This document shows, in pieces, positions 30,767 to 53,748 of a stretch of DNA of 64,000 nt. Positions within the stretch are counted from its first letter, which is position 1. Each line of letters opens with the position of its first letter. The DNA is from Diplonema japonicum (Eukaryota; Protista; Euglenozoa: Diplonemea). Where the stretch lies: contig OZ025671.1 in the NCBI GenBank assembly GCA_964019335.1, forward strand, positions 248,001 through 312,000. Reading direction: 5' to 3'. The notes below the pieces were generated by a model. It had not been told where the DNA came from. It ran no database searches and worked only from the letters and a program-made list of their open reading frames with translations. A program made the translations under genes and the position numbers.

Positions 30767-33516
30767 TCAGCTCAGCTCGAAACCTGTGTTATGCTGGATC
30801 GCCGTAGAGAGCTTCTCGCGCAGCTGGGGGAGGTTAGCGTATGGGGGAAGCTTTAGGAGGCACATGCACGTGGAGGCTGATGGGAGGCGGTCAGCTTCAC
30901 CACCGAGGTGGATACAGAACTTGGGGTGCAGGTACTTGAACCCTAGCAAGGGAGCACGGTCTACAGAAGTAGCGAATTTCAATAGCTGCCGTTGTTGTTC
31001 GGGGGTGAACTGTTCACGGACGACCTTTTATTGTTAAATATATATTTCTTTTTTATTTCATTTTCTTTTTTTCAACAGACCTTCCAGAACATTCTAATGG
31101 TATTGTGTCCTGCAGAGTAACCCCCACCGTACACGGAATTCTCCTCCCAGTCATCGATGTCCAACGGAGCCGCGTTGTCATGCCCGCACAGCAGCACCTG
31201 AAGCTCTGTGGAGTCGAACATGCGCAGCCAAGAAGGAGAAACAACCTCCTGGAGACCTTCCTTCATGGCTGTGACTTGTTTTGAGATCTGCTGCGTTAGC
31301 TTGAAGTACGACATCATGTGGATGTACCGCATTTTGTTCTCGTCCGTGACCGGTGTGTCAGCCCCTCCAGGGAAGAACTCTATCGTTTTTGTAATCCCAA
31401 CCCGATCCACCGTCACCGCAAAGACCAGCCCGACAGATTCCACCTCGTCAGGCAGCATGGTCTTCAACTGGAGGAGATTTTTATGAAGCTCCGGGTCTAG
31501 CGACGACAAGTCATGCATGCAGTTGCTTCTCTCAAGAAGCGAATTTCTGAAAAACTTCGTCAATGGCAAGTCGATCAGGATCCCTTCATACAGTGCCTTG
31601 CCCAACACTCTTCCGAGAAACCTATACCTCTCTAGATGTCCTTCCCCATACAAATGTTCTTCGTTCGAGGACGGGTTGGGGAACACTTCGTTTGCTTCCG
31701 TCTCCAGGAACAGGCCATGGGCTGGGTTGAAAGCTACCTTCGACAACTCCGCGAGGAACTCCTTGAACACACCGTCGCCGAAACCAGCCTCTTCAACACC
31801 ATCTCGTGAAATGAAGGCGACCCTCGCTTTCATCTTCAGCTCGTCGGGCGTCATTCTTGTGATGGCTCGGAAACCATCTTCAAACACCCTGTCACGTCTG
31901 ATGGTGGCGTTCTGCCCACCGAACCACGCCATGTCCAACCCGAGGGAGTTGATGTCCTGCTCGACTAGCGACCTGAACATCAAAACGCGTGAGTCAAATG
32001 GGATTGTGAAAGGTATGTTTTGCAAGACTAAGAACGTCCTGTAGACAGGGGAGCCCTTGTGGTGGGCCCGCCAGTCGTCGAGGGCGATGCTAGTCGGCCA
32101 TGGGAACGGTGCCTGCACGATCCAGTGCTGGGGTTTGAGGAACTCTTTTCGTCCGTTCCAGTCATGGAGCTTGCGCAGCAGGCTCATCATTTCATCGCGA
32201 ACGAGCACGGAGGATGCTTCATGGAAGATGCTCCTCGTGCCGTGGTTGATCAGCTTCAACGTCACATCTGTAAGGTCTAAGCAGTCTTTAAGCTCGTCAA
32301 TATGAGAGCAGTCCAAGAAATGCCCGCACGCAAGCAGGAACAGGTACAACGGCTTGACCACGTGGTCTTCGTACTTCACCGCCCTTGCGATAGGGCCCAT
32401 GTCCAGTCTGGACCCCACATCCTTCCACAGAGCTCTCAGGAACCCATCCGAGAACGCCAGCACCGTCAATACTGCTGTCTTCGCCTTGTTATCACTGCAC
32501 TTCGATAGCAGAGCTGTGTAAAAGCTGCACACGTGCGACAAGTCACCCTGCTTCGTTGCCGCGCTGATCGCCCGCCGCCCGAAAGACGGCTGCATTATGT
32601 ATAAGGTTTGTATGTTCTTGCTCACCCATGCCGGGCTGGTGTGCTGCAGATACTCCCCAAACAGGTCCACTAATGGCGTCATGAGGGACGGCTCATCAGA
32701 GATGAATGATGGCAACACTCTGCTGAAGCCTTCTAACACACCACCCGCCCACAAACCCTCCTCACAGCACTCCTTGAACATCTGCAGCACGGTTGCTCCA
32801 GAGAGGTCGAAAAGAGTGTCGAAGCCGAGGATCTTGCCTGCGGTGGTGACCTGTTTAGTGTTGCTTGAGACACGAAGGGATCTGCTGAAGATATGGATGA
32901 CAAAGGACTTGAACCCACCGGGAGTGAACGAGGTTCCTTGTTGCAGAACACCTTTGACGACATCCTCTGTTGGGGCGACGAGGTGGCTGAAGACGTTGAG
33001 CGACACACATTTTTCTTGAAGGGCATGGAAGAGGATGCTGTCTGTGAAGCATGTAGGGTTGATGACAACTGCAAGGAGCTCAGGGACATAGAGGCACTCA
33101 AGGGTGGCAGCTGTGATGAGTTTCAAACACCTGTTGAAGTACAGGACAGGATCCACCGTTTTGTGAAGTAACGTGAAGGCAGCTGTATCGCACAGAATGG
33201 CAGCCGCAAGCTCAGGGAGCAATCGAGACCGTGAGGCTGGTGACGCTAATGAAAAATGCCGCAACTTCTCAACTACACTTTCAAGCCTGCCCAACCCGCT
33301 CTCCAGCTTTGCGTCTACGTCGGCTCTGCACCTACACCCTCTGACCCAGCTCTGTATTTTCACACTAGCATCAACATGCACACGAGACTCCTCCCGCTGT
33401 GCCCGCTGCTTTCGTAACGATTCCATTTTCTCTCTGCGGCCCAGGCCGCGCTTGGAGCCCGCCATGCTCACCTTGTGATCCACACCCCTGCCATCGAAAT
33501 GCATGAAGGAGGCCAT
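30767..33516 (-). CDS. UBE3C: HECT E3 ubiquitin ligase, UBE3C/UBE3B-like; intron 31025-31080
   Basis: N-terminal IQ motif (IQSWVRG), [24 protein letters not shown], catalytic [15 protein letters not shown], terminal GFELS. Confidence 0.92.
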
Positions 33517-39025: not shown

Positions 39026-39220
39026 TTTTTTTTTTTTTTTTTTTTTTTTGTGTGGCTTCTTTTTTTTTTTCCCACCACAAGCAGATACATTTCAAAAGGG
39101 ACCAATGAAAAAAAAAAATGAAAAAACTCGAAGAGGGGAACAGTGCGCCCGCAAAAAAAAAAAAAAAAAAGAGATGAGATAAAGGAGGTTCCTGTTTTGG
39201 AACGTCCCCCTTGTCTCTAC

Positions 39221-42200
39221 TTATCTACCCCTTTCTCCCTTCTGGGGCCTCGGCCTTTCTTTCTTTTTTGGCTGTGTTGCCTTCCTCAAAGTATCCTCCC
39301 TTTCTTCTTGCCACTTTCTGCCCAGTTTCTTAAGGTCCTTCTTGGTTTTCTCTGATGCAAAAACTGGCCTTCTGTTCCATCCCAGACTCTTCTTCGCACC
39401 TATGGTTCTAAGCGCGTGGTTCTTCTGGCTCTCCGCTGGGAAGATCCGCTTGCCTCTGACCTTCTTCTGTATGCGTGCTGTGTCCCACCCCTCTTGGATT
39501 CTTTCCAGGAGGCCGTGGAAACTCCGCGCTTTCTTCTGTATCATGTCTAGATCACCCTTCTTCCCCGTGATCGGCTCGACGCCCAGCGTGTTCTCGAAGT
39601 CTAGTACGAGTTCCATTGTGGTGACTGTCGTCTTCCTCAGTCCATCGTACCACTTCAGCTTTTTGAGCCACTTGACGATGTCTTCACCGTGCTTCATCAT
39701 CAGGCTCCCGCTCACATGCTTCCTCAGCTCCTTCCATTCAGGTGGCGCATGAGCGTTTCCTTCCGTTATCTGTTCCCAGGGGTGCGTCGTGTACGTTTCT
39801 AGCTTTCTCTTGTCCTGGAGAAGCTGGTCCCGTTTTGCCACCACTTCCAGCAGGTAGTATTGCGTCTTCCTCAGCCGGTGTTGGTGTGTTCGGTGATCAC
39901 GCGGGAGCGTTCCATGTAGCTGCATGCAGATTGGCATTTCCGTCTTGCTGGCCACTACTTCTGCATGTACTTCCTTCTGTTGCACCTCCTTCGCCACACT
40001 GCATTCCCATAATGCGTGTCGCAGCATGTTGCTCTCGTCCTCCTCCGCACCGCACGCGTCGCATGTGACTTCGTCTGTTGTTGGTCTCTTGTTCACACGC
40101 TCGTGTGTCTCGTCCCCTTCCTCTTCCGAGCTGTCCTCGCTTTCGCTCTGCTCGCCCTCTGGGGGTGGTACCCGTCTGGTGATTTTGTCCTGGTACCACG
40201 CCTTTGGGTGGGTGTAGAAAACCCCTCCCGCCACGATCCTCCGGAGGTCTCTCGCTGCCATTGCTCCTTGTGGTCCGAGTCTCATCAGCTCTCGCCACAG
40301 GTCGTTCGTGCGTGGGTCTGCGCCCCGGTCTAACCCCTCCATCGAGCGTCTTCTGTCCTGTATGTGTTCCGCACGTCCCGACCTTAGCTTTTCTCGCACT
40401 ACATGTGCGAATTTGTCCTTGTTCTCAGCTAGCATTTCGGTGAACTGCCCCCAGTTTGTGCTGATCTTCGGGAGCCACCGCTTCATCGCGTTGCCTATCG
40501 GGCCCAAAGGTGTCGTTCTTGTCGGGTCTTGGTACCCTTTGGCAAGTCTCTGGCACCGCTCCCACACCTCTCCCAATTTTCGTCTCGTTCTGTATATGGC
40601 TGCTAGTGCTCTGTAGGGCGCTGCTACCTCTGGGTCGTGTGTGTGTCCGCTGAACAGGTTTGACAGCACCGCCGCTGGTGATCTTGTTCTGTACCTCGGT
40701 CCCCACAAGGCGTATGTCGCGGTTGATGTGAGCGATTTGAGGTATCCTTCCGACGGCGGCGCGAATGCAACATCATACAGACAGCTGGGTAGCACCGTTG
40801 TTCGCAGGACTTCCGCTTTCTGCCAGAAAGAGAGCTGAGTGGTCGCGAGCCTCCGTAGCGTGTCGCCCGCCGCCCTGGCCCTGGTGTTGTCCGTCTGCGT
40901 CTGACCATCCGTGCGCATCCTCGCCCCCAGGATCTTGATCTTGTTCGTGGACCGCAGCTGCCTTCCTGCTACCTCTATCCCTGGTGCCTTCGCTCCTGCT
41001 GCGAACACTTCGGACTTCTTCGTGTTGAGCTCCATGCCAACTATGTCGCAGAATGCGGATGCACTGTCCGTGGCTTTTTGTAGTACTTCTGCTAGTTTCG
41101 CCAACAGGTATGCGTCGTCCGCATACGACAGAGTCTCCGCTCCCGTTCGTTCCTCCACACTCCTCATCAAGACCGCTAGTAGAGCGTTGATCATGATGAT
41201 GGAGATCGGGCACCCTTGCAGGATTCCGTTTGTGGTTGTGAACTCCTCGCCTACTCCTGTCGCGTATCTGAATCTCCTTCTGAGACCCTTGTACATCCCT
41301 TCTAACGCTCTCAGGATACCTTTGTCCATTCCCATCCGTTCCATCAGCTTCAGCACCAGTTGTTGTGGAACTGTGTCAAAACACTTGGCGAAGTCTAGTG
41401 CGACACCCAACAACGGTGTCTTGTCCATCGCTGCTTCCTCTATCCTGGTGCAGATGTCCATGAGAACGTCCTCTGTCCCATGTCTGGCCCTAAACCCGTG
41501 TTGAGTTTTGTGGATCCAGGATTCTTGCCATTCGAGAATATCACCAAGCCTTGTGCACGCCCATAATCTGTACACTGCCGACGTGACTGTTATGGGCCGA
41601 TGCTCGAGTGGTCCTGCGTTCTTGGTCTTCGGGATAAGGGTCACCAGAGCTGTCAACGCCGACTCCGGCCATTTTCCTGTCTCCTCTACCTCATTGAGGA
41701 AAACAGCCCATGCGTCCAATATGGATACTGGTAGCCTTCGTAGCTCTGCCATCCGCCAGCCGTCTACCCCCGCTGCGCTTCTGGCCGTCTTTTTCTTCAG
41801 CACCTGCTTCAGGCGTATCCCAGTGATCGGTGTCCACACCATGTCTCTTTTTTCGATGTACGCACCGTACTCCTTCTCGAATGTTGCGTACGCGGGCTGG
41901 GGCTTGTCTCTGTATTTCGCAAAGACATGTTCCCAATGTTCCCTCATTGTCCTGTCCAATTCCTGCGGGTTTGCAATCGTGTCCTTTTCCATCTCCACAG
42001 TTGCTGTCCCCCGCTTGTCCTCGATTCCTTTCGCGCTGTCCACGAGCTCCTTCGTCTCTTTTCCTTGTTCGACTGAGTCAAGGTAGCTCCTGTGCCTTGC
42101 CGTGCGCTGTTCCTTCACCATCTCCCGTTCGCGTCTCTCCACCGCCTCTGACATGATCTCTGCATCCGCCACCATGTCCTCGATGTTGGCCTGCGTCGGG

Positions 42201-44062
42201 TCAATGGGTAGGCACTTCACGCGCGTGTGTTCGAGCTCCCCGTTCAGGTTGTGGATTGTGTTCACCGTAACCTTACTGAGCTGCCCTCCTCCTCTTTTCT
42301 GCAACATGTTGAGCTGCGTCTGAATGGCTCTCAGCCTGCCTCGCATTTTCTCCAGCCGTACTTGCATGATCGACGCTGCCCCACACGAGCCAGTTGTTGT
42401 TGGTGCACATAGTTGTCTCTGTTGCGGTTGTCTCACCTTGCCGCGGCCCCTATAAGGTGCCGTGCCGACGGTCTCGTCCCCCAGAAGTATCTTCTCGCTC
42501 GCCTCAGCTAGCGCGAGGTACGCCGCCTCCGGGTCTTTTCGCATGTGTTCCCTGAAATTGCTCTCCTGGAGTGCCTTACTCCCCTCTTCTTCTGCTGGTT
42601 CCACGCCTCCTGGGATTTCTCGGGGTATCATGTATCTCTTCACAGTCTGCTGGAATCTCGCAAGTCTCAGCTCTACCGTCAGAGTCATATGGTCCGCCCC
42701 CTTTACATCCCTGCTTGTTCTGCAGCCCTGTAGCGCCTGTGCTGCGAAAGCGTTCAGGAGGATGTAGTCGATCCTCGATGCACAGTTCTTCCGAGTGAAG
42801 GTTGGCATCGGGTCTTCTCCTTTTCCCGCTGCGCATGCTCCTGCCGCATCAGTCCATCCGTTCATCAGCGCGTGACGAAGCTCATACGATCTTTTCTCGT
42901 CCGTGTTGAGGTCGCCTGCCACAATCACGGGGACGTTCCCGAGCTCCATCGCCTTCTTCCTGAGGACGTGCTGCAAGAGTCGTTCTCGTTGCCTCCTTGG
43001 TTCCTCTCCCTCCCCTGCTGGGCAGTACACGGTGATGATGTGCAGCCACATATTTTCCCCGTCTATGCTGACCCTTGTGTGTTGCCACCTACTGTTGATG
43101 TCTTGCTTAGCGTCATCCCTCTCGAGTGATGTTCCCAGAGCTGTTCGTGGCTCGCGTACAAAAGTCGCCAGGCCTCCTCGTCTTGCGATATCTATAGATA
43201 TCAGACCTTCCTTGATCCTTCCCTGTTGCGGGTCTGCCCACATAGGTCTGTATTTTCGCTTCTTGTTCTTCTCTGTCGCGGATTTCATTGCGTGTGCCAC
43301 CTCTTTCTGTCCTGCTGCCGTAAGTGCAGTCTCTTGTAGGCAGATCACGTCGACGTCGAGCTGCATGACGCTTTCCAGCCTGTTCCTCAGAGACGCTACA
43401 TTTGCAGTTGCGAGATGGAAAACCTGTGTCGGTGGCTTCTTGGTACTGCCTGTTTGTTCACCCTCACTACTTAGGACTTTAAGTGTGCGGTTACCAGCCT
43501 TCTCATAGGGGGTATGGCGCCCCTGACTCGCCCCCGTCCCAGTGGTCAGGACACCCCTTCGTTCAGGGCCGGGTAGATTTCCCCGTTGTTGTAGAGTCGA
43601 AGTCTGGCCAGGTGCTGTAGCCTTCTTGTTCCGAGTACCAAGTGCCACCTTCAGCAGGTCCTCCATCTGCACTACCGTGGCCTCCGTCTTGCCCAACCAA
43701 TCCATCATGTGTAGCGGCGCGAGTACAGCGTCGTAGTGCTGGGAGTCGTAAGCAACTATAATCGTCTGCTTCGCCCCGTCTGGCTTCGTGGCTCGCACCA
43801 TTCTCTTTTTGTGGAGGATCCAGATACATGTCTGGGTTGCCCATCCTGCCGCTCCGAGGGTGTAGTAGTCCCCCCACTCTCCGTCATGCTCAATCCTTCT
43901 GAGAGAAAGGGAGTGTTTCCTTGCTTCTTTGTAAAACTCCGGGTTCGTCGCGATGTACTCTGCTGCCTGTGCGCGTACTGTGCTGGCGTTCCCTGCTCCT
44001 CGCGCCCTAGCAATTGCAGCGAACTGGCAATTTCCGTCCCCTTCCACTGGCATGTATCTCAT
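39221..44062 (-). CDS. Element B ORF2: OTU cysteine protease, AP-endonuclease, reverse transcriptase, zinc finger, C-terminal domain
   Basis: OTU GDGNCQF..EWGD..QHYD; APE ANVASL, CLQET, GDLN, RIDYIL, ADH; RT LDFAKCFD, GILQGCP, YADD; CDAC..HALWEC. Confidence 0.95.
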   Translation of the reverse strand: MRYMPVEGDGNCQFAAIARARGAGNASTVRAQAAEYIATNPEFYKEARKHSLSLRRIEHDGEWGDYYTLGAAGWATQTCIWILHKKRMVRATKPDGAKQTIIVAYDSQHYDAVLAPLHMMDWLGKTEATVVQMEDLLKVALGTRNKKATAPGQTSTLQQRGNLPGPERRGVLTTGTGASQGRHTPYEKAGNRTLKVLSSEGEQTGSTKKPPTQVFHLATANVASLRNRLESVMQLDVDVICLQETALTAAGQKEVAHAMKSATEKNKKRKYRPMWADPQQGRIKEGLISIDIARRGGLATFVREPRTALGTSLERDDAKQDINSRWQHTRVSIDGENMWLHIITVYCPAGEGEEPRRQRERLLQHVLRKKAMELGNVPVIVAGDLNTDEKRSYELRHALMNGWTDAAGACAAGKGEDPMPTFTRKNCASRIDYILLNAFAAQALQGCRTSRDVKGADHMTLTVELRLARFQQTVKRYMIPREIPGGVEPAEEEGSKALQESNFREHMRKDPEAAYLALAEASEKILLGDETVGTAPYRGRGKVRQPQQRQLCAPTTTGSCGAASIMQVRLEKMRGRLRAIQTQLNMLQKRGGGQLSKVTVNTIHNLNGELEHTRVKCLPIDPTQANIEDMVADAEIMSEAVERREREMVKEQRTARHRSYLDSVEQGKETKELVDSAKGIEDKRGTATVEMEKDTIANPQELDRTMREHWEHVFAKYRDKPQPAYATFEKEYGAYIEKRDMVWTPITGIRLKQVLKKKTARSAAGVDGWRMAELRRLPVSILDAWAVFLNEVEETGKWPESALTALVTLIPKTKNAGPLEHRPITVTSAVYRLWACTRLGDILEWQESWIHKTQHGFRARHGTEDVLMDICTRIEEAAMDKTPLLGVALDFAKCFDTVPQQLVLKLMERMGMDKGILRALEGMYKGLRRRFRYATGVGEEFTTTNGILQGCPISIIMINALLAVLMRSVEERTGAETLSYADDAYLLAKLAEVLQKATDSASAFCDIVGMELNTKKSEVFAAGAKAPGIEVAGRQLRSTNKIKILGARMRTDGQTQTDNTRARAAGDTLRRLATTQLSFWQKAEVLRTTVLPSCLYDVAFAPPSEGYLKSLTSTATYALWGPRYRTRSPAAVLSNLFSGHTHDPEVAAPYRALAAIYRTRRKLGEVWERCQRLAKGYQDPTRTTPLGPIGNAMKRWLPKISTNWGQFTEMLAENKDKFAHVVREKLRSGRAEHIQDRRRSMEGLDRGADPRTNDLWRELMRLGPQGAMAARDLRRIVAGGVFYTHPKAWYQDKITRRVPPPEGEQSESEDSSEEEGDETHERVNKRPTTDEVTCDACGAEEDESNMLRHALWECSVAKEVQQKEVHAEVVASKTEMPICMQLHGTLPRDHRTHQHRLRKTQYYLLEVVAKRDQLLQDKRKLETYTTHPWEQITEGNAHAPPEWKELRKHVSGSLMMKHGEDIVKWLKKLKWYDGLRKTTVTTMELVLDFENTLGVEPITGKKGDLDMIQKKARSFHGLLERIQEGWDTARIQKKVRGKRIFPAESQKNHALRTIGAKKSLGWNRRPVFASEKTKKDLKKLGRKWQEEREDTLRKATQPKKKERPRPQKGERGR

Positions 44063-44143
44063 GAGCAGCTGTTCGGCTGTGCTTCGCAGGAGTTGCCTCT
44101 CCGTTCCCTCTGTCCTCCCGCCGCCCCTCCATGCTCCTGCGTT

Positions 44144-45826
44144 TCATCGCCTCACGCACGCGCGGCATACCTTGCGGCTGCATCCGTCAACCTGGCACCT
44201 AAGCTGGTACCGCTTCTTCGGCTGCTGCTTCTCGCAACCGTCGCACCACCACCTCCCCTGCTTCTTCTCGCCCTCGTCGCGGTCTGGGTAGATGTGGGCG
44301 TGCCTGTCCGTGTCCCTCTCCCTCCGCCTTCGCTCGGTGTCCCTCGCTAGGCTCCGGCTCTTCGACTTCGACGACGCCCTCGACTTCGTCTTGGCCCTCG
44401 AGGTCGTCGTCTCCGCCGCGTATCCTGCCGTGGCCTGTTCCTCGGGCTCCACCGACATCCTCACCCCAGACGGGGATCTCATCCTCGGCTTCGGTGATGG
44501 TGATCGTGATGCCGATTGTGTGGGGGGTGTCGTCTCCCTTGTTGACTTCCCTCCAACCTTCCGTTTCTTCTCTGTTGGCTTCCCAGAGAGCTTCTCCAGC
44601 ATTGCCTTCAGTTCTTGCACTTCCTTTCTGAGAGCTACCACCTCCTGTTCGAGCATCTCTTCTTTTTTCGTAGGGCCTTGCAGTTGCTGCTGCTCCTTCT
44701 GTTGTTGTTCCCGCGTGTGCTGCTTTCCTTGTTGCTGTTGTTTTTCTTGCTGCGGGTGCTGTTGCTCAGGTGCTACCTTCCCAGCTTCGACCCACGCCTT
44801 CTGCCCGTGTGTCTTCCCGTATAGCGCCAGGAACTGGCGCTTCGTGTACGTGCGCCCCGCGTACTCTTCCGGGTCTGCGGGGTCCGTCCTCTTCTCCTCC
44901 TCCTGCTTTCGCACTGCCTTCGGCGGCGGCTTCCCTGCCTCCCACACCTCCGCCGTTCCTCCCTGCCATTTTATCTCCCCGAAACTTGGGGGTGCCTCCG
45001 CCTGCAACACAGCCACTGTGCCCCCCTGCTTCGGGATGGTGCGGATGACCACCGCTTTCCACCCTGCTTCTTTGACAACCTCCTCGATGGTGGTTGTGTC
45101 CGCGCCCTTCGGGAGACCTCGGATGTCGTAGGTGGTCTTTCTGACAACCCCGAGGCCTTCCTTCAGGAGGTACTCCTGCACTTCCTCCCTTCTCTCGCTG
45201 ACCTGCAGGCCCCATCCCTTGCCGTTCAGCGTCAGTGTCGCCGAGGGGGTGATCCGTGTCATCACTGCCCCAAGTACGTTTTGTGCCAGCCAGTGCTGCC
45301 TTGTGGACATCCACAAGGCCCCCCTTTCCCTCCTCTCGATCTTCCAGGGACCGTCCTCGTTCCCTAGCGCGGTCCCCTCCTGTTCCGGTGCCATCCAGAT
45401 TAGGAAATCCATGACAGATTCCCCCTTCTTGCCTTCCCTCTCCATGTGTGGCCCTACGTGCACTCCCGTCAGGCCCGCCTTGCCGAGAAAAGCCATCACA
45501 CTCTTTCTCGGGTCTTCCTTCGCCGCTTTCCATGCCTCGTCTCCTGCCGCCCACTCAGCCATGATGGCCCTGCAGGCGACCTCCTCCTTTGCGCCCTTCA
45601 CCGGCGCCTTCTTCCTTTCCCCTCCTTTCCCGCTGGCCGCCTCCCTTGGCGCCACCAGCCGCTGCACCGTCACCGTCCCGCCACTCACCTTCTTCCCCAC
45701 CCTCTCCGCCCAGTTTGGGCCCTGCCCGTCCCGGCGCGTCTGCACCGAGCTTTGCTCGGTCCCAGGGGCACCGCTTGGAGGTGCGCCGGGTTTGCTTGCT
45801 GATTGCTCTGATTGATGTTCGCTCAT
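44144..45826 (-). CDS. Element B ORF1 (RRM-like region, coiled coil, C-terminal Cys zinc finger)
   Basis: YDIRGLPKGA..EEVVKEAGWKA RRM-like; coiled coil EQEVVALRKEVQELKAMLEKL; CDGC..CQVDGCSRKVCRAC. Confidence 0.85.
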   Translation of the reverse strand: MSEHQSEQSASKPGAPPSGAPGTEQSSVQTRRDGQGPNWAERVGKKVSGGTVTVQRLVAPREAASGKGGERKKAPVKGAKEEVACRAIMAEWAAGDEAWKAAKEDPRKSVMAFLGKAGLTGVHVGPHMEREGKKGESVMDFLIWMAPEQEGTALGNEDGPWKIERRERGALWMSTRQHWLAQNVLGAVMTRITPSATLTLNGKGWGLQVSERREEVQEYLLKEGLGVVRKTTYDIRGLPKGADTTTIEEVVKEAGWKAVVIRTIPKQGGTVAVLQAEAPPSFGEIKWQGGTAEVWEAGKPPPKAVRKQEEEKRTDPADPEEYAGRTYTKRQFLALYGKTHGQKAWVEAGKVAPEQQHPQQEKQQQQGKQHTREQQQKEQQQLQGPTKKEEMLEQEVVALRKEVQELKAMLEKLSGKPTEKKRKVGGKSTRETTPPTQSASRSPSPKPRMRSPSGVRMSVEPEEQATAGYAAETTTSRAKTKSRASSKSKSRSLARDTERRRRERDTDRHAHIYPDRDEGEKKQGRWWCDGCEKQQPKKRYQLRCQVDGCSRKVCRACVRR

Positions 45827-45916
45827 GTTAGTTCCGCCCCCTTTAAAAAAAAAAAAAACTCAAAGTGCAGGACAAACCCCCTCATGGAGGGCCGCCCTTG
45901 GGTGGGTTAGGGGGGG

Positions 45917-48900
45917 TTATCTTTTTATACTCCCCTTCTGGAGCATTGCTTTCGTTCCAATCGAGGCCTTGAGCGTCTTGCGGAGTCGTGTGATGCGGTC
46001 TCGCTTGTAAGCGGCTTTCAGTTCCATCAGCTTGTCGTGAGTGGTGTGGGTGGCGAAGATGGGCCTCCTGGCGAAACCCATAGCCGTCTTCCCACCTATT
46101 GCGATGAGGGACTTCACTCTCTTCTGTTCATCTGCTGGGAAGGGGCGTGGCTTCTTCCGTGCCCTGCATGCCGCGTTCAGCTTTCTTATCAGTGCTTTGA
46201 TCTTGCGAGCCCTATCTTCCAGCAGACCCCCCAGTAACTTGCCTGTCGTCCATTCGAAGTCGATGGCCAATTCCACCGCTGACACTTCAGAGCTGGTGTC
46301 CTCCTTCACCCATCGTAGCTGTGACAACCACTGCAGCAGCGGGTTCAGGAATTCTGCGACGATTCCTCCCACTCCTTCGAGCTCCCCCGCCGTTGGCACG
46401 AGGCATCTCCTTCCCTCCACATTGCGTACCCACGGCAGCGGCTGTGTGCTGGCGTTGTCTATTTGCATGAGCTCCACATCCCGTTTCCCGACCACCACAG
46501 CCATGTATCGCTGCAGCTTCTCCAGGTGTGCGAAGACATGCCCCCTCGGCAGTATCGCGTGCAGCTCCAGACATAGGGGCCATCCTGATCTGTTGCGCAA
46601 CGGCTCCATTCCGTCTAGTGCCAGTTCCTCTTGTGCACAGGCGCACTCATACAGCTGATGGCGGAGTAAGGTCACCGTGTCCGGGTGTGGAGACTTGCAC
46701 AGGTCGCATCTGAATCCTTGCGTGTGCGATACCTCCGTCGTTGGTGCCTGGCCCATGTTCTCCTCGTCGTCACCGTTGTCGTCACCTTCAGGCGCCAGTG
46801 GGACGCTCTTTCGCTTCGCATTTGCGTGCGGGTTTAGGTAGGGAACCCCTCCTGCGATCACTCGTCTCAGGCTGTAGGACATGAGCGGGTCCTTGGCCGT
46901 CCTCCATAATCGGTTCGTCTTGGGGTCCGCCCCCGGCTCTATCCCGCTTATCGTGCTCCTCTCGACCGCCAGCGTCCTACTTCGGGCCTTCCTCACCACC
47001 TCTCTAAAGATGTGTCCGCGTTCGGCCCAAGATGTGTTGCAACCTAGTAGCTGCGCCCAACTCCATCCTATTCGGGGAAGCCACCGGCAGACCAGGTTGC
47101 CAACCGGCCCCATCTGGATGGAACCCGCGTCATACCCCGCAGCGATCTGCATGCATCTCTGCCGTAGCCGACTGTCATCGAGTGCTCCGGATACTACCTT
47201 CAGGGAGTGGTACATTACGTAGGAAAGGGGGTCATTGGTGTGCCCCTTCAGCAGGACTGTGTTTACCGCGGTGGGCGACCGTCCACGGTGATGAGGGCCC
47301 CACAGGTTACAAGTGATCTTCGTCGTTAGCTTCTTGAGTGCCTCATCACATGGAGGGGAGAACGGCCCACTGTATAGGCAAGATGGCAGGACCGTCGTGC
47401 TGACCAAGTGTGCTTTGGTTTCGAAAGCAATCCTTGTGCCCCCCAGTCGGTCCAGCGAGCCAAGCGCCCCCGTGGTCGGTTTGTTCCACGTCGTTCCTGT
47501 CCTGCGTGTGTTGATCTTCACCCCCAGTCCGCAGAGGTCTGTCACCGTCTTGTAGGGTACCGCGACCTCCAAGCCTTTCCTCATCTCCGTTCGGTTTCCT
47601 ATGACTTTCGACTTGAAATCTTCAGCAGTGCCGAAACCAACAGTCTTCTCCTTGTTGATTTCCATCCCCGTCAGGTCGCAGAACTCCAATGTCCCATTGA
47701 CCGCAGCTTGTAGTGAGCCACGCAGCTTTGCCAGCAGGTATGCGTCGTCAGCGTAGGCTAGCACTTCGGCGTCTGGCGCGACTTGCTCGACTGCCCGCAC
47801 CATGATGGACAACAGGGCGTTGACGACGATGACTGACAGGGGGCATCCTTGGAGAATGCCGTTCGTTGTCTCAAATGTTTCTCCCACTCCTATGGGGTAC
47901 TTGAACCTCCTTGTGATTTGGGTGTACATCCCTTGGAGTGCTCTCCCTATGGATTGGTCCATCCCCAGGGCGTCCATGAGGTCGAGAGACAGCCGTTGTG
48001 GCACTAGATCGAAGCATTTTCGAAAGTCTAGGGCTAGTCCTTCCAGCGGTTCTCCTTCCACCAGAGCTAGTTCCAGCTTGGTACATAACTCCATGAGGGC
48101 AGTTGTCGTACTGTGTTTGGGTCGAAACCCGTGCTGTCTCGGCGTGATCCAGCGTTCTTGCCAGTCAAGGACACCCTTCAGCCTCGTACACGCCCACAAG
48201 CGGTAGATGGTGCTGGTCACTGTGATGGGACGATGATTCAGTGGTGCTGACCCCTCACCCTTCGGAATCAGGGACACCAGTGCTGTCGTGATCTGTCTCG
48301 GCCACTGGCCTGTTTCCTCGATCAGGTTGAAGAGGTCTGCGAAAGCCTTCAGGATGCTCGTTGGGAGACGCTTCAGTTCACTCATCCGCCAACCGTCCAC
48401 GCCACATGCTCCTTTCTCCGGCTTCTTCCTGATCACTTCCCTCAGCTGTTCTGCTGTGATGGGAGTCCGTGCCATTGGGGCTTTCTTGATCAGGTCCCCG
48501 TAACGTTGTGCAAACCGCTCATACTGTGGCTCTTCCTCGAGTGTTCGCGCACAGAAGACGCCCGACCACGCGTTCCGCATCACCTTGTCCATTTCCTGTA
48601 GGTTCGCCGTCACCCCCCCGTCTGCTACCTCAACCACGTCCGTTCTCTGGTTTGGGCGGTCTCTGACCCAGGCTGTGATGTGCTTGCGTTCTTTCCCAAA
48701 GTCAGCACGGACTGAGCGTTCGTAGGCCTTCGTCTGCATTCTCTTGCGGTATTGGAGTAGCTCTGATAGCATTCCCTGAGCGAAGTCCTCTGCTATGTCC
48801 AGCTCCTCCCTGATGCCGTCGATACCCCCTGTCGCGTCCACCTGGCAGTTGTCAACCTTCAGTTCTTCTCCTAGTGTCGCAATATTTCTGAGGACGTTCC

Positions 48901-50110
48901 GTAACTCTACCGGCAGCGGACCGCAGTGTCCGTTTTCATAAAGCCTTAGCATTTGCTGTTGCGCACTGCGGATCTTGTGCTTCAGCTTTTCCAGTCTTTG
49001 TTGTCTGTTCGATGCCGCTCCGACCGCCGACTCCGCCGACCTCGCACTTAGCTCCGATTTCGTAGGTTCCCGTACTTTGCCTCTCCCGGTGTACACGCTG
49101 CGCGTCGGCCCCTTGTACCCATGTAATAGGTACTCCTCTGCGAGGTCTGATATCTCCGAGAAAGCTTCGGTGGGCTCCTGTGCTGCTATGAACTCCCGGT
49201 ACCTCGACTTCTGCATCAGTGCCTTCGCCACCTCGCCAGGCGCCTTCTTGGTCTTCGGTATCTCCTGTGGGATGGTGTACCTCAGGACTTCTTGACGAAA
49301 AGCTGGGATGTTGAGTGTCACCGACAAGCATCGGTGGTCCGACCCGGTGATCATATCGCTTACTCCGCAATGTTCGAGACCTTGGGCCGCGATGTTATTC
49401 AGCAGGACCCTGTCAATCCTCGTGCTGCAGTTGGTCCTAACGAACGTGTCCTCCGCCTGTACACCATCCCTTCTTGCACAGAACGCAGCGGCGTCTACCC
49501 AGTCTGTCTGTATAGCTTTCCTTAACGTGGGGGATCGTACTTCGTCCGTGTTGAAATCGCCCACCACGGCCACAGGCACGTCTCCCAGTTCGAACTTAAG
49601 ACGGCAAAGGATGTAGTGGAGAAGCTCTTCACGGTATTTCGTCTTGGCTTGGTCCTGACCCGAGTGGCAGTAGACGTTGATCAGGTGAAGCCACCGTTTG
49701 CTTCCATCGAGTGAGATCTTCACGTGTGACCACCTGTCCCTGTGCGGCCCATTCGTTTCACAGCGCACCGCCGTACGTGGTTTTTTCACCAGGGTTCCTA
49801 GACCACCCCGTTTCGCTATCGTCAGAGATGTGACACCACTGGACTCCCTGCCTGGCTGTGGCTTGCTCCAGAATCTGGCGTATCGTTTGCCCCAGTCATC
49901 GTCTCTCAGCACGTGTTCGATTTCCAGCTGCGTCTGAGCCGTGAGGGCTGTCTCCTGGATGCAGAATGCGTCCGGGAGGACGGTGGAGTACTCGCTCAGC
50001 CTGTTGTTAAGTGATGAGCCGTTGTGTGTGAAAATGGTGAATTTCTCGTGTTCTGGCTCTGGTCCGGGGTGGGGTTCGATACCCTGTTCGGTGAGACGTT
50101 CAAATTTCAT
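45917..50110 (-). CDS. Element A ORF2: 2A-like peptide, AP-endonuclease, reverse transcriptase, zinc finger, C-terminal domain
   Basis: RLTEQGIEPHPGP; APE HNGSSL, CIQET, GDFN, RIDRVL, SDH; RT LDFRKCFD, GILQGCP, YADD; CDLC..HQLYEC. Confidence 0.95.
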   Translation of the reverse strand: MKFERLTEQGIEPHPGPEPEHEKFTIFTHNGSSLNNRLSEYSTVLPDAFCIQETALTAQTQLEIEHVLRDDDWGKRYARFWSKPQPGRESSGVTSLTIAKRGGLGTLVKKPRTAVRCETNGPHRDRWSHVKISLDGSKRWLHLINVYCHSGQDQAKTKYREELLHYILCRLKFELGDVPVAVVGDFNTDEVRSPTLRKAIQTDWVDAAAFCARRDGVQAEDTFVRTNCSTRIDRVLLNNIAAQGLEHCGVSDMITGSDHRCLSVTLNIPAFRQEVLRYTIPQEIPKTKKAPGEVAKALMQKSRYREFIAAQEPTEAFSEISDLAEEYLLHGYKGPTRSVYTGRGKVREPTKSELSARSAESAVGAASNRQQRLEKLKHKIRSAQQQMLRLYENGHCGPLPVELRNVLRNIATLGEELKVDNCQVDATGGIDGIREELDIAEDFAQGMLSELLQYRKRMQTKAYERSVRADFGKERKHITAWVRDRPNQRTDVVEVADGGVTANLQEMDKVMRNAWSGVFCARTLEEEPQYERFAQRYGDLIKKAPMARTPITAEQLREVIRKKPEKGACGVDGWRMSELKRLPTSILKAFADLFNLIEETGQWPRQITTALVSLIPKGEGSAPLNHRPITVTSTIYRLWACTRLKGVLDWQERWITPRQHGFRPKHSTTTALMELCTKLELALVEGEPLEGLALDFRKCFDLVPQRLSLDLMDALGMDQSIGRALQGMYTQITRRFKYPIGVGETFETTNGILQGCPLSVIVVNALLSIMVRAVEQVAPDAEVLAYADDAYLLAKLRGSLQAAVNGTLEFCDLTGMEINKEKTVGFGTAEDFKSKVIGNRTEMRKGLEVAVPYKTVTDLCGLGVKINTRRTGTTWNKPTTGALGSLDRLGGTRIAFETKAHLVSTTVLPSCLYSGPFSPPCDEALKKLTTKITCNLWGPHHRGRSPTAVNTVLLKGHTNDPLSYVMYHSLKVVSGALDDSRLRQRCMQIAAGYDAGSIQMGPVGNLVCRWLPRIGWSWAQLLGCNTSWAERGHIFREVVRKARSRTLAVERSTISGIEPGADPKTNRLWRTAKDPLMSYSLRRVIAGGVPYLNPHANAKRKSVPLAPEGDDNGDDEENMGQAPTTEVSHTQGFRCDLCKSPHPDTVTLLRHQLYECACAQEELALDGMEPLRNRSGWPLCLELHAILPRGHVFAHLEKLQRYMAVVVGKRDVELMQIDNASTQPLPWVRNVEGRRCLVPTAGELEGVGGIVAEFLNPLLQWLSQLRWVKEDTSSEVSAVELAIDFEWTTGKLLGGLLEDRARKIKALIRKLNAACRARKKPRPFPADEQKRVKSLIAIGGKTAMGFARRPIFATHTTHDKLMELKAAYKRDRITRLRKTLKASIGTKAMLQKGSIKR

Positions 50111-50203
50111 GTCAGATAAGCGTATCGGATTGTATTTGGAAGGATGGGAACGGGGCGGAGGGAATGGGTTTGGGGGGTGGGTTTGGGGGGAGCCCTCATG
50201 GAG

Positions 50204-52447
50204 TCATTGTTCGCATTGTTCGCACCCGCGGCATTTTACCCTTTTGCAGTCTGGTAATATGCAGGTCTGTGCTGGGTTGTTCTTTGTGATGTTCCCGCCG
50301 CAGTAGTGGCATACACCCTTCCAGCATTGATATGTCCCGTTGTAGACGTGGCAGATGCCCTTGCCCAGGCAGTCGTCAATGTCGGCGGGGCCCTCGTCCA
50401 GGTCGATGTCGGTGTCATCGTCAGTTGGGGGGGGACCCAAGTCATCTTCGGAGTCGTCCATCATCTCCTCCCCGGCAGCAGGGCGCATCATCGGGGCCCG
50501 GTTCCCGGGGACGGGCTTCGAGAGCGTCGCTTCCGTGAGTCTCTTAATTTGCTCGGTGAGCGCGGCCATCTGGATGTGCATCTGCCGGACCTCCTCCCGT
50601 AGCTCCGCGTTCTCCCTCCGTAGACTGACCACCTCAGCCGGCGGCTTGACGTCGCTGACCGGTTCCCCTGCAAGTTTACGAAGTGCGTTTTCGATTGCTG
50701 TGAGGCGGTCCTCAAAGGCCGGGGGATCGGCTTTCTTCGATGTTGTGGGCGACTTACCGGACTTCGGTGGGGCGGCTTTACCCGTAGGGGCAACCTTCTT
50801 TCCTGCAGCTGGTGGTTTGTGGTCTGGTTGAGAGGACCCCGTCACTGCTCCGAGGTACGACTTGCCCGCGTTGTTTGTGGTCCCCGTTTTCGGCCTTCCC
50901 CAGGACTGAGCTGGCGGTGTCTTTTTGGTGGGTGGGTTTCTAACGTCGGGAGCTATCCTGCAGTTGAGGACCCGCCCAGTTGGGGACGTGATCTTCAGTG
51001 ACGTGGTTGGGGGTTCGCCCCCTCGGATGTACCAGCACCTCATGCTGTTGCACCATCCGCCGTGTAGTGGGACGGCCTCCCACTTAATCGCCTCGAGTAT
51101 CGCCTCAACGTGTTCGGCTCCGCACTGCCCGTACAGTCCCGACAAACGCCACCTGGGCTCCCCATGCTGCCCGCGTTGTCGCTCCTCCTCGCCTAATACC
51201 TTGTCGAGGAGCGTGGTTTTCCTCTCCTCCGATGTCCTCACCCCGAGACGGCCGTCGGATTCGCGCAGCGCTAACCCCTGCTTCTCAGTCTCCGCCAGCT
51301 CGAGTGCCTCTTCCAGAGTGATCTCCTTCGGGAGCCAGGCGACAGGGGACTTCTCCACGTCCTTCGGCTTGACGAAGATCCCCATCTTCCCGGATGCACT
51401 TACGAGGCGGCGGCGGTTCTCGGTTGCGATCGTGACGAGCACGTCAACCCTTGGGGCCGGTCCATCCACGTACTTGTCGATCCTGTGGATCGTCTTACAG
51501 CCCAGCATCTCCTGGACCAGCTTGCGGGGTTCGGAGGTCACCCTCTCCCAAGTCTGGGCTGGGGTGTGCGTCTTCGAGACGACGAAAGCTACCCGCGTGT
51601 ACATCGCGGCCAGGTCAATACCCACCGTGTTTTTGTTTTTTTGAGAGCGCGAGATCTTTCCGCTCAGTACGTGCAAGAACATTGTCCTGTTCGAGTACTC
51701 TCCAGCCGCCTTGAGCACGACGTCGTGTTCGTATCGACCCTTGCCGTTGCGTTTGAGGAGGACTGCCTTGTTCCCGTCCCAGGGCATCTTTTCTGCCTCC
51801 TCCACGTTGACCTCGGTCGCGATGGCTATGCCATCTTTCCCTGCCACCAGCTCTTCCCACTCTATGAAGGGTAGGTCGAACTGTCCCTGCTCGAGGAGCC
51901 AGCATTTCTTTGCCTGCGGTTCCTTCCGTGGTGGCTTGCTGTTCGGTCCCCTCCATGCCTTCGCCTCTCCGTCTGAGGTTGGAATCCCGACCCGTGGCAG
52001 CTTGAACTGCTGCATAGCTTTCTTCAGCACGTTCACGTTGAACGGCTCCGTGGCGTTGAGGTATGCCCGGCCGTCGAAGGCGACGTGGATGGGCTGCTTC
52101 TTGGACTTGGACTCTCCCACGATAGGGGAGACGATGAGGGCGCCGTCGTCGGCCGTAATCAGGTGGATGTCGGTCTTCAGTGCGCGGGCGGTGGCTTGGA
52201 TGGTAACCGGGTCCGCGGCGGTCCCCTCCCTGGCGTGCTGGGAGCAGTACAGGTCGTAGTCTCCGATGACACTCGCCCGGTACTCCTCGCTTCCTCGCAG
52301 CTCTTGTATCATGCGGCGCCTAACGTCGCTCCCCTTCTTTCCCGTCTTCTCTCCGACCACTCCGTAGAAGGAGTTTCCGTTTCCAATCCCGTACCCCTTC
52401 CCGCGGGCTGTCATCCCGTACCCCTTCAAAGCTTTGTGAACGTCCAT
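50204..52447 (-). CDS. Element A ORF1 (degenerate OTU-like N-terminus, RRM-like region, coiled coil, Cys zinc finger)
   Basis: GNGNSFYGVV..TAADPVTIQATARAL..IHVAFDGRAY; WRLSGLYG..LEAIKWEAVPL; CHYC..CILPDCKRVKCRGC. Confidence 0.85.
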   Translation of the reverse strand: MDVHKALKGYGMTARGKGYGIGNGNSFYGVVGEKTGKKGSDVRRRMIQELRGSEEYRASVIGDYDLYCSQHAREGTAADPVTIQATARALKTDIHLITADDGALIVSPIVGESKSKKQPIHVAFDGRAYLNATEPFNVNVLKKAMQQFKLPRVGIPTSDGEAKAWRGPNSKPPRKEPQAKKCWLLEQGQFDLPFIEWEELVAGKDGIAIATEVNVEEAEKMPWDGNKAVLLKRNGKGRYEHDVVLKAAGEYSNRTMFLHVLSGKISRSQKNKNTVGIDLAAMYTRVAFVVSKTHTPAQTWERVTSEPRKLVQEMLGCKTIHRIDKYVDGPAPRVDVLVTIATENRRRLVSASGKMGIFVKPKDVEKSPVAWLPKEITLEEALELAETEKQGLALRESDGRLGVRTSEERKTTLLDKVLGEEERQRGQHGEPRWRLSGLYGQCGAEHVEAILEAIKWEAVPLHGGWCNSMRCWYIRGGEPPTTSLKITSPTGRVLNCRIAPDVRNPPTKKTPPAQSWGRPKTGTTNNAGKSYLGAVTGSSQPDHKPPAAGKKVAPTGKAAPPKSGKSPTTSKKADPPAFEDRLTAIENALRKLAGEPVSDVKPPAEVVSLRRENAELREEVRQMHIQMAALTEQIKRLTEATLSKPVPGNRAPMMRPAAGEEMMDDSEDDLGPPPTDDDTDIDLDEGPADIDDCLGKGICHVYNGTYQCWKGVCHYCGGNITKNNPAQTCILPDCKRVKCRGCEQCEQ

Positions 52448-52659: not shown

Positions 52660-52697
52660 CAATAAAGTACAGAAACTGTAGCTTTAGAATCGTTGGT
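52660..52697 (-). other. Genomic copy of the spliced-leader exon (diplonemid type), fused to the 5' end of element A
   Basis: ACCAACGATTCTAAAGCTACAGTTTCTGTACTTTATTG; contains the euglenozoan SL core CAGTTTCTGTACT.TATTG and closely resembles the Diplonema SL as I recall it. Confidence 0.9.
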
Positions 52698-52729
<32 letters not shown>

Positions 52730-52790
52730 TATAGAAAGAAGTAAAAGGTAGCTAAGTAATGACAGAAACTGTAGCTTTAGAATCGTTGGG

Positions 52791-52822
<32 letters not shown>

Positions 52823-52854
52823 TATAGAAAGAAGTAAAAGGTAGCTAAGTAATG
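52669..52854. repeat. Tandem duplication of a 93-bp unit (flank + T18 + partial SL) at the 5' junction of element A
   Basis: Units 52669-52761 and 52762-52854 differ at one base (52697 vs 52790). Confidence 0.9.
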
Positions 52855-53748
52855 AGTAGGAATCAATAATACAAAAAAAGAAACCCCCCCAAGGACGGGA
52901 GATCTAACCCATCGGAATTTAGCCGATTTTTATCGGCTCCTGTCCTTGGGAGGAACAAATACTTTCGGACGCGTAGATTTCTTTTTCTTTTTTTTTTTTT
53001 TTTTTTCTGCTAGTCGAAAGAAGTAGCTGTGCGGTCTCATCCTTGAGCATTAACTTCCTGTACCGAACGCTATTCGGGTTTGCAACCCTTTTTCTTATAT
53101 TTCCTGCAAGTGGTTTAATCCCCCTCTATTCTTATCAGGGGAGACAACGAAGAGAACGGGGGGAGGAAATCACAAAATAAAAACACACAAAGGTAGTCCT
53201 CCCCCCCCTTTTTTTTCCCCTCTTCTTTATGCAGCATGCGACAAACCCGGAGATGCCTGGTGCGCACAGATTGAACGAGAAGAAGAAAAAAAAGGGAATC
53301 ATGGAACTGCACACAAGAAAGAAGGAGGTAGAAATATAATCTGTGTAAAACTCTTTTTTTTTTTTTTTTTTTCTTTCACTCCTCTCCTGTCTACCCAATC
53401 CTCACACTCCGTGGTGTGCTTGCTCGTGCTTGGCTGATAATATCGTCGTCCTGTTTTTTTGTACCATTTATTTTTTTTTTCCCCCTCCCGTTTTCCCATC
53501 ATCCATCATACCCACGAATCGTTGTCAGCGTTCGGACTGTCCACCACTAGGTCGTGCCGATCATCATCCCTCTGCCCACGCGATTTATTATAGCAATACC
53601 GAATCAACAACAGCACTAACAACAAGGTAAGTGCCATACCCACCACTGCTATGTCTGTTTGCCATCCCTTTCGTAGCATGGCCCTGAAGAGGAAATGGCA
53701 CAGAAGATATACAGGGGGGGGGGGGGAACAATGCTAAAGACACACTAT

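Follow-up and report, generated by a model that had tools for sequence, protein, structure and literature searches.

Stop-codon readthrough between gag and pol is textbook knowledge. For long interspersed nuclear elements (LINEs), translation of the second open reading frame (ORF2) from a bicistronic RNA is a long-standing question, and only termination-reinitiation models are on record; indeed, reinitiation is the only mechanism shown so far for a LINE ORF2 (UAAUG coupling in SART1, and human L1; PMC3708506, PMC5972666). Here we describe two LINEs, A and B, in a window of 64,000 nucleotides of Diplonema japonicum DNA (assembly GCA_964019335.1, contig OZ025671.1, positions 248,001 to 312,000 of the forward strand; "the window" is this whole stretch, in whose own numbering positions are given). 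In each of them the first open reading frame (ORF1) ends in a TGA, and ORF2 continues in the same frame behind a short linker that is followed, or spanned, by a candidate release device. The comparison of these junctions with those of related elements suggests that ORF2 is made by programmed UGA readthrough and then released by a 2A peptide or an OTU protease, which we consider the best explanation of the data and a probable one.

A and B are arranged head to tail on the minus strand, and we take them to be active LINEs of the apurinic/apyrimidinic endonuclease (APE) type from a euglenozoan, most likely a diplonemid, host. The Pfam families Exo_endo_phos and RVT_1 exceed their cut-offs in both (3.9e-9 and 6.2e-21, respectively, in ORF2 of element A). 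Element A consists of the following parts, in which RT stands for reverse transcriptase:

52660-52697, minus strand: 5' end, a 38-nucleotide copy of a kinetoplastid/diplonemid-type spliced leader with a T tract before it, read from the sequence.
50207-52447, minus strand: ORF1, 747 amino acids, with an OTU-like, catalytically dead domain at the N-terminus, a region resembling a coiled coil, and a zinc finger at the C-terminus.
50204-50206, minus strand: ORF1 stop TGA, next base C (CAA TGA CTC), read from the sequence.
50111-50203, minus strand: linker of 93 nucleotides, or 31 sense codons (LHEGSPQ...IRLSD), in frame with ORF1 and ORF2, C-rich.
50060-50098, minus strand: 2A/StopGo-like peptide RLTEQGIEPHPG/P, an N-to-H variant, with the predicted skip between G (50065-50063) and P (50062-50060).
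45917-50110, minus strand: ORF2, 1397 amino acids from the ATG at 50110 to the stop TAA at 45919-45917, with APE at about 49978-49334 and RT at about 48268-47633.
45845-45916, minus strand: 3' untranslated region (UTR) with a short hairpin, ending in GAG and 14 T on the sense strand, read from the sequence.

The corresponding parts of element B are:

44147-45826, minus strand: ORF1, 560 amino acids, with a C-terminal zinc finger, from the open reading frame and the sequence.
44144-44146, minus strand: ORF1 stop TGA, next base A (CGA TGA AAC), read from the sequence.
44063-44143, minus strand: linker of 81 nucleotides, or 27 sense codons (NAGAWRGGGRTEG...EQLL), with AWRGG/G at 44134-44120.
43721-44110, minus strand: OTU cysteine protease domain with intact Asp, Cys and His (DGNCQF ... 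HYD), from profile and predicted fold.
39221-44062, minus strand: ORF2, 1613 amino acids from the ATG at 44062 to the stop TAA at 39223-39221, with OTU, APE at about 43411-42749 and RT at about 41632-40922.
39153-39220, minus strand: 3' UTR with a hairpin and 18 T on the sense strand, read from the sequence.

In both cases the TGA comes a few residues after a CxxC...CxxC zinc finger at the C-terminus of ORF1 (CRGCEQCEQ-stop in A and CRACVRR-stop in B). The original prediction, made from the letters of the window, had placed the elements, their TGA codons and the in-frame linkers of 31 and 27 codons behind the zinc fingers, and these positions proved accurate to the base.

The 62.5-Mb genome was searched for other LINE lineages with the endonuclease of A and the OTU region of B; junctions were fetched as pieces of 0.2-2.5 kb, and the 3' ends of ORF2 were sampled as 160-nucleotide pieces. 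Besides the lineages of the two window elements (A1 and B1), nine further ones have the TGA, an in-frame ORF2 and a stop-free linker (A2-A5, F49, B2, F43, F41a and F41b). A2 and A3 are approximately 85% identical to A in nucleotide sequence, and endonuclease identity to A is 85% in each of them, 74% in A4, 69% in A5, 49% in F49 and 41-43% in F43, F41a and F41b. The TGA is kept in 18 of 18 aligned A-type copies (A1-A3) and in A4 and A5, as well as in all 15 aligned B copies and in family B2. From the TGA to the first conserved ORF2 domain, the frame is free of stops in 11 of 11 in-frame lineages, over 20-77 codons, the other two frames being mostly interrupted by stops, and all indels and differences in linker length are multiples of three. 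The ratio of nonsynonymous to synonymous substitution rates (dN/dS) among A1, A2 and A3 is 0.15-0.44 over the 31 linker codons, with 0.09-0.21 for the flanking ORFs, and the linkers of the A lineages share PSKY(N/D)P together with the context upstream of the 2A peptide. Judged by these sequence comparisons, the linker is evolving as coding sequence.

Conservation of the TGA, of the frame and of the stop-free linker had been proposed as a test of the design, as had the dN/dS of the linker; the conservation holds among copies, subfamilies and deeply diverged families, and the dN/dS is below 1. Copies lacking the TGA, which had been named as evidence to the contrary, did not appear. Other expectations were redrawn by the wider sample. 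The shared design had been attributed to two families, of which the sharing stands and the number does not, since at least 11 lineages carry it; similarly, the in-frame arrangement holds throughout these 11 lineages, which supersedes the figure of 1 in 9 that had been given for chance. Frame-shifting linkers, also named in advance as contrary evidence, are absent from the same 11 lineages, but a sister clade (F44 and F45, below) has ORF2 in the -1 frame.

Two other accounts of the TGA were rejected. A copy-specific nonsense mutation is ruled out by its presence in every copy and lineage. An intron spanning the TGA is ruled out because A, F45 and others carry a spliced-leader copy, and are thus copies of processed mRNA, and because an intron would not survive retrotransposition.

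The identity of the stop codon is itself constrained. ORF1 ends in TGA in 13 of 13 lineages (F44 and F45 counted), whereas ORF2 of the same lineages ends in TAA (2), TAG (7) or TGA (2), with TAA in A1 and TAG in A3 (one-sided Fisher p = 4.2e-5). At these divergences, and given that TGA to TAA is a single transition, such constancy points to selection for UGA itself. This observation bears on the mechanism known from other LINEs, in which ribosomes terminate and restart. Here they would reinitiate without an AUG within about three linker codons, so that the ORF2 protein would never be fused to ORF1, and the 2A peptide or the OTU protease would trim a short leader, as in the single-ORF L1Tc/ingi elements. 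Apart from being the mechanism with experimental precedent, such a restart has in its favour that SART1 coupling likewise needs downstream structure, that the 2A of L1Tc/ingi, 40-80 amino acids from the N-terminus, sets a precedent for a 2A peptide behind a short leader, and that F44 and F45 point to a route other than readthrough within this group of elements. Reinitiation accepts any stop, yet the ORF1 codon is invariably TGA whereas the stop of ORF2 changes between lineages; to include the conserved RGG of B and the 2A context of F49 (27 codons from the stop to the Gly-Pro junction), ribosomes would need to restart within about three codons, no conserved restart codon is found near the stop, and the changes in the host release factor described below point specifically at UGA. 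We regard reinitiation as unlikely, although it is the main alternative to readthrough.

Start codons are also informative. A2-A5, F49 and F43 lack an in-frame AUG anywhere from the TGA to the point where the catalytic residues of the endonuclease begin, and the position of the A1 ATG is AAG in A2 and A3. If ORF2 had its own mRNA or its own AUG, through an internal trans-splice acceptor or internal entry in the linker, translation would begin at the ATG at 50110 in A and at 44062 in B, and the common frame would be incidental. A1 and B1 do have an ATG at these positions, and the linker of A is pyrimidine-rich, like a trans-splice signal; however, the lineages just named lack such an ATG, their next in-frame Met being inside the endonuclease core, and in A1 the first AG past the pyrimidine tract falls downstream of the ATG. 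In B, the first Met (44062), which is Met28 in linker numbering, lies past the first helix of the OTU domain and inside its fold, and the RGG shared by B1 and B2 lies upstream of it. A separate start for ORF2 is, in our judgement, very improbable.

Taken together, the exclusive use of UGA, the lack of an AUG, the coding character of the linker and the start of the OTU domain of B before its first Met argue for readthrough rather than a fresh downstream start, and with the release factor data they support the original proposal that ORF2 is made by UGA readthrough. In the scheme that we favour, ribosomes would translate ORF1 and most would terminate at the UGA, while a minority would decode it with a near-cognate tRNA and, much like ribosomes on retroviral gag-pol, go on across the linker to translate ORF2 in the same frame. 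One mRNA would in this way give much ORF1 protein and little endonuclease/RT without internal initiation. In the A lineage the 2A/StopGo peptide would then skip the Gly-Pro bond co-translationally, and in the B lineage the OTU protease would cleave the chain behind the RGG, which resembles the tail of ubiquitin and lies a few residues beyond the stop. The readthrough event, its efficiency and the residue inserted are inferred, the support being comparative.

The host release factor eRF1 provides evidence of a different kind.

L078:45-494 (G000:C12), minus strand: exon 1 of host eRF1, a single gene.

This eRF1 has TAASIKS in place of TASNIKS (N61S), the substitutions S70A and G73S, and one extra residue in its GTS loop, and it keeps Glu55 and the YxCxxxF motif. 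The changes are common to four close relatives only (80-93% identical); other eukaryotic matches are canonical or carry a different variant. The eRF1 of Euplotes, with A70/S73, does not recognise UGA (Eliseev et al., PMC3025575), and in human eRF1 UGA termination is reduced 2.4-fold by S70A and 4.3-fold by S70A/G73S (PMC3025575). In Blastocrithidia, Ser70Gly of eRF1 is the UGA-readthrough substitution (PMC12153298). These UGA-weakening changes thus bring new support to the readthrough of the LINE junctions. We infer that the variant eRF1 makes UGA leaky in this host, and that UGA would be a weak stop in the lineage, of which the LINEs make use.

The same substitutions could also be read as signs that UGA is decoded efficiently here, by an ambiguous code or a dedicated tRNA, in which case ORF1-ORF2 would be close to a single polyprotein and the UGA would set no low ratio. 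Euplotes, which has the A70/S73 pair that accompanies SIKS for NIKS in this host, does read UGA as sense (PMC3025575), and release devices placed right after the stop would suit a polyprotein. The distribution of UGA speaks against this: it occurs once per element, only at the boundary between ORF1 and ORF2, the more than 2,000 codons of either element containing no other, no in-frame stop is present in 26 host dynein heavy-chain frames of 2,300-4,650 codons, and the long ORFs of the window, by a crude count, end in all three stop codons. Efficient decoding is therefore improbable in our view, and UGA as a general sense codon is ruled out by the stop-free dynein frames. TGA flags in HSP70 matches were also considered and set aside; they fall where match pieces end, as would be expected of exon boundaries. 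Host introns exist, as seen in a HECT-domain ORF (31010-31075, minus strand) whose apparent TGA at 31072-31074 belongs to an intron of about 57 nucleotides (GT...AG), the domain continuing in another frame; because introns interrupt ORFs in this manner, ORF-based counts of stop codons are unreliable in this genome.

Insertion of selenocysteine at the UGA, as reported for the Naiad Penelope-like elements, would likewise account for a UGA-specific signal, and Euglenozoa possess selenocysteine machinery. A search of elements A and B against Rfam gave no match resembling a selenocysteine insertion sequence at E up to 1, the 3' UTRs have only 55-75 nucleotides with one small hairpin, the AUGA of A1 is absent from A3, A4 and A5, and the UGA sits in a linker and not in a redox motif. 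We give this possibility almost no weight.

The release devices were analyzed separately. The 2A-like motif of element A reads RLTEQGIEPHPGP (50098-50060), and in its relatives A4 and A5 the core octapeptides GIEPNPGP and GVEPNPGP fit exactly the expanded StopGo consensus (D/G/C/N)(V/I)ExNPGP, for which an association between Gly-p12 and Pro-p15 is reported (PMC12846837). The 2A peptide originally proposed for A is thus present as a motif-like sequence; its canonical Asn is not, as A has HPGP, the canonical form being that of A4 and A5. In L1Tc, N-to-H (HPGP) occurs in 20% of the copies and lowers, without abolishing, 2A activity (PMC3708506), so that element A may separate its proteins incompletely. 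The distance from the UGA to the Gly-Pro junction is 27-60 codons, with no AUG in most lineages, and only if the linker is translated would at least about 18-30 residues precede the 2A core.

The predicted release site of element B, AWRGG (44134-44120) followed by an OTU domain, was as originally proposed, and the catalytic triad of the domain is intact. The OTU domain narrowly misses the Pfam gathering cut-off (22.2 against 23.3 bits). It aligns with OTU1 of the PDB (E = 0.0015), including the catalytic Cys and His in DGNCQF and HYD, and in the OTU alignment C39 never varies, while conservation reaches at least 90% at D36 and H136. The AlphaFold2 (AF2) model has a mean predicted local distance difference test score (pLDDT) of 89.8, and linker residues 14-25 form its first helix (pLDDT 86-98). 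Foldseek matched this model to OTUD1/2/3, yeast Otu1/2 and the nairovirus OTU with probability 1.00, and homologues from a library of 1.8 billion proteins align from about linker residue 12. The profile and fold evidence compensates for the Pfam miss, and on this combined evidence the domain is an OTU protease by sequence and by predicted fold.

An RGG lies 4-8 residues past the stop in both B1 and B2, whose OTU domains are 41% identical. In several distant OTU homologues, (R/L/S)GGG(R/K) precedes the catalytic DGNC by about 25-30 residues (EEYRGGGRVEGRD is one case), and since they keep it at the same distance from the catalytic site, the Gly-Gly motif is a feature of the family and fits a ubiquitin-tail-like cleavage site. 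Cleavage by the OTU domain in cis at this RGG is what these features would predict. The domain might instead serve as a deubiquitinase that protects the element or stalled ribosomes, with no part in ORF2 release, which would affect this component of the scheme. Its closest folds are indeed cellular and viral deubiquitinases, a 2026 preprint, which reports Josephin and OTU domains in the ORF2 proteins of LINEs from other protists, links them to ribosome stalling (PMC13405545), and the RGG tail is not docked in the cleft of the AF2 model. A role limited to deubiquitination is harder to reconcile with an RGG/GGG whose spacing ahead of the catalytic site is constant among B1, B2 and distant homologues, and with the loss of all three catalytic residues from the OTU copy of the A lineage, which has 2A at the junction. 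OTU-superfamily proteases also process viral polyproteins at GG sites, as do arterivirus PLP2 and tymovirus PRO. Overall, a purely protective role is doubtful, but it carries appreciable weight.

The OTU copy of A escaped Pfam, which found nothing in its ORF1; the N-terminus of ORF1 (52447-51968, minus strand) matches the OTU alignment with an hhalign probability of 96.6%, with the catalytic residues replaced (D to N, C to S and H to A). This dead domain is followed by AKAWRGP, which resembles the AGAWRGG site of B. B1 and B2 also share QRGN(L/S)PGPER(R/W)GVL between OTU and endonuclease (approximately 43480-43520, minus strand, and locus L055), roughly where the sister families have 2A, and this could be a degenerate 2A relic. 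Near the ends of many contigs, 2-7 kb inwards, some 30 loci (G000:C9:6555-6962 and C16:770838-771245 among them) contain a distant OTU, 25-27% identical to that of B, in open frames that reach about 2,970 codons; this suggests a subtelomeric element family that carries OTU.

The sequence context of the stop differs between lineages. It is UGA-CUC in A1 and A3, UGA-CUA in A2, UGA-CUG in A5 and UGA-CAU in A4; thus four of the five A lineages have UGA-CUN, followed by a C-rich, G-poor tract, and UGA-CUA is the classical type II viral site of alphaviruses and others (PMC13517186). For the linker of A no RNA structure is predicted (fold z-score of about 0). Structures are predicted behind the stop in three other lineages:

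L057:1985-2113: hairpin after the ORF1 UGA of F43, from structure prediction.
L059:157-285, minus strand: hairpin after the ORF1 UGA of F41b, from structure prediction.
L053:1844-1972: hairpin after the ORF1 UGA of F49, from structure prediction.

In F43 and F41b, a hairpin of 11-12 bp with the loop GGAG lies 5 and 11 nucleotides past the stop, respectively; its outer stem differs in sequence between the two but pairs in both. F49 has a 16-bp hairpin 11 nucleotides past the stop, and F43, F41a and F41b have in common another stem of 11 bp, in which one pair is compensatory. Given how few these sequences are, a role of the hairpins as stimulators of readthrough is suggestive only.

The sister clade formed by F44 and F45, which are relatives of B, behaves differently.

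L051 (G000:C2:150500-153000), plus strand; L052 (G000:C11:77800-80300), minus strand; L060; L070: F44/F45 loci, from fetched sequence.

Here ORF1 also ends in TGA, ORF2 is in the -1 frame, and a good canonical 2A follows about 20 codons later. The -1 frame of ORF1 has 0 stops across approximately 590 codons, where 7 and 10 would be expected; for comparison, B1 has 4 stops in this frame with 8.8 expected and A1 has 18 with 16.1 expected. In both F44 and F45, the first AUG after that of ORF1 falls in the -1 frame. This looks like leaky scanning into an overprinted leader that would be removed by 2A, or like -1 frameshifting. The argument from TGA exclusivity is thereby tempered a little, and the group of elements appears to have more than one solution.

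These data can be joined into a broader view, in which the whole diplonemid LINE superfamily would express ORF2 by UGA readthrough, enabled by the host eRF1 (A70/S73, SIKS and altered GTS loop), with interchangeable release modules (2A, OTU with RGG, and in F44/F45 the overprinted -1 leader, reached by leaky scanning and removed by 2A) that all avoid internal initiation. This extension is tentative, and we would place it just short of an even chance. If it is true, it would represent the first gag-pol-type recoding strategy in retrotransposons without long terminal repeats (non-LTR), and a naturally occurring example of mobile elements that take advantage of a stop codon weak throughout their host.

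A number of observations weigh against readthrough or its coupling to release. The lineages share ancestry and their counts are not independent, so that conservation of the frame does not amount to 11 separate events if the linker is coding for any reason. Human L1 ORF2, as Alisch et al. reportedly found in 2006, starts without an AUG, and lack of an AUG alone thus does not exclude reinitiation. F44 and F45 keep the TGA although their ORF2 is out of reach of readthrough. The context UGA-A, found in six lineages, is not among the classically leaky ones, and downstream of its UGA B1 shows no significant structure by fold z-scores. The Asn of NPGP is absent from element A of the window, with HPGP in A1-A3 and in F49, and AF2 leaves AWRGGG disordered instead of placing it in the OTU cleft. 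When S70A is the only change in eRF1, its recognition of UGA is restored by eRF3 in vitro (PMC3025575). Finally, a possible RNA run, available as contigs and labelled with another organism, has zero depth over 50105-50478 and no contig that bridges the junction; related LINE pieces are present in the same run (X1) at 85-95% identity.

Copies of A and B are dispersed in the genome, some of them truncated at the 5' end, and near-identical full-length copies are also found. Many of the latter are approximately 100% identical with intact frames, which indicates that the design with its TGA transposes. Two LINE families of the genome are transcribed, as shown by EukProt Trinity transcripts identical to them. 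The spliced-leader copy at its 5' end implies that the template RNA of A was a mature trans-spliced mRNA, and F45 carries the same head. By contrast, the 5' UTR of B comprises only about 18 nucleotides (GGGGGCGGAACTAAC, 45827-45844, minus strand) and has no spliced-leader copy; every B copy (L031-L043) starts at GGGGGCGGAACTAAC, 18 nucleotides before the ORF1 ATG and directly after a genomic T tract. Rfam gave no ribozyme like that of hepatitis delta virus in either element. At the 3' end, all families checked (39153-39170, 45845-45858 and L061-L069) share one type of tail: a short hairpin, GAG or a comparable triplet behind it and finally, in place of poly(A), a T run on the sense strand.

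Several side observations concern the insertions themselves. Upstream of the spliced-leader head of A is a direct duplication of about 90 nucleotides (52700-52900, minus strand), which includes a T tract and a truncated spliced-leader copy. Insertions sit directly after genomic T tracts, and A has inserted immediately upstream of B, the two being separated by nothing but the T run of A. The B-related fragments L046-L050 are truncated or rearranged copies and are uninformative. The nearest named homologues of ORF2 are generic annotations of Diplonema papillatum with 33-49% identity, and the gene models of the D. papillatum and Logan homologues (P0004-P0008) are truncated at the N-terminus.

Full-text literature searches found no description of readthrough as a route to a LINE ORF2, and reviews list only reinitiation; the nearest statement concerns Zorro3 of Candida, with in-phase stops between its ORFs by an unclear mechanism (PMC3956500). 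The original prediction had also known of no description of such a system. This holds for the link to readthrough, which is new, and not for the devices, as both 2A in LINEs and deubiquitinase or OTU domains on ORF2 proteins were already described. Should the link between eRF1 and UGA hold, UGA may be leaky in general in diplonemids, a group that ranks with the most abundant eukaryotes of the sea, with effects on the annotation of their genes and the prediction of their proteomes. As compact natural cassettes for readthrough plus release, the short linkers could also find use in expression work in trans-splicing protists.

Each part of the arrangement has relatives among known systems. The gammaretroviral gag-UAG-pol and LTR elements with UGA-separated gag and pol, such as Tca2 of Candida, have, as is proposed for the elements described here, an in-frame leaky stop between a structural and an enzymatic protein, later separation by a protease or its equivalent, and a ratio set at the ribosome. 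The diplonemid elements differ from them in being APE-type non-LTR elements, in using always UGA and in a predicted release by 2A or OTU in place of an aspartic protease; for Tca2 the mechanism of stop bypass is unresolved (PMC3956500). The type II sites of alphaviruses, coltiviruses and triatoviruses (UGA-CUA or UGA-CGG with extended downstream stem-loops) resemble the UGA-CUN of four of the five A lineages and the hairpins of F43, F41b and F49, which begin 5-11 nucleotides past the stop as compared to +9 to +16 in the viruses (PMC13517186). Unlike these sites, six lineages here have UGA-A and the A lineage lacks detectable structure.

Among LINEs, L1Tc/ingi (Heras 2006; Odon 2013, PMC3708506) share with the window elements a 2A peptide just upstream of the endonuclease in a euglenozoan host, and also the HPGP variant. 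Those elements mostly have one ORF with an AUG 40-80 amino acids before 2A, whereas here a complete ORF1 and an in-frame UGA precede the 2A, in most cases without an intervening AUG. SART1 and human L1 are similar in that the mRNA is bicistronic and ORF2 needs ribosomes that have translated ORF1; they rely on a UAAUG overlap or a 63-nucleotide spacer and accept any stop, as opposed to UGA only, a coding in-frame linker and release devices. The ORF2 proteins with Josephin in Haematococcus or OTU in Symbiodinium (PMC13405545) carry, like B, an OTU or other deubiquitinase domain ahead of endonuclease-RT. No upstream in-frame stop or RGG is mentioned there, whereas in B the OTU comes right after the UGA and the RGG is conserved. 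Regarding eRF1, the host shares the A70/S73 pair with Euplotes, and Blastocrithidia has S70G; UGA is sense in those organisms, whereas here it is absent from long frames and appears to be a weak stop. Thus, the comparative signal points to a retroviral solution in a non-LTR element, with two or three alternative candidate release devices.

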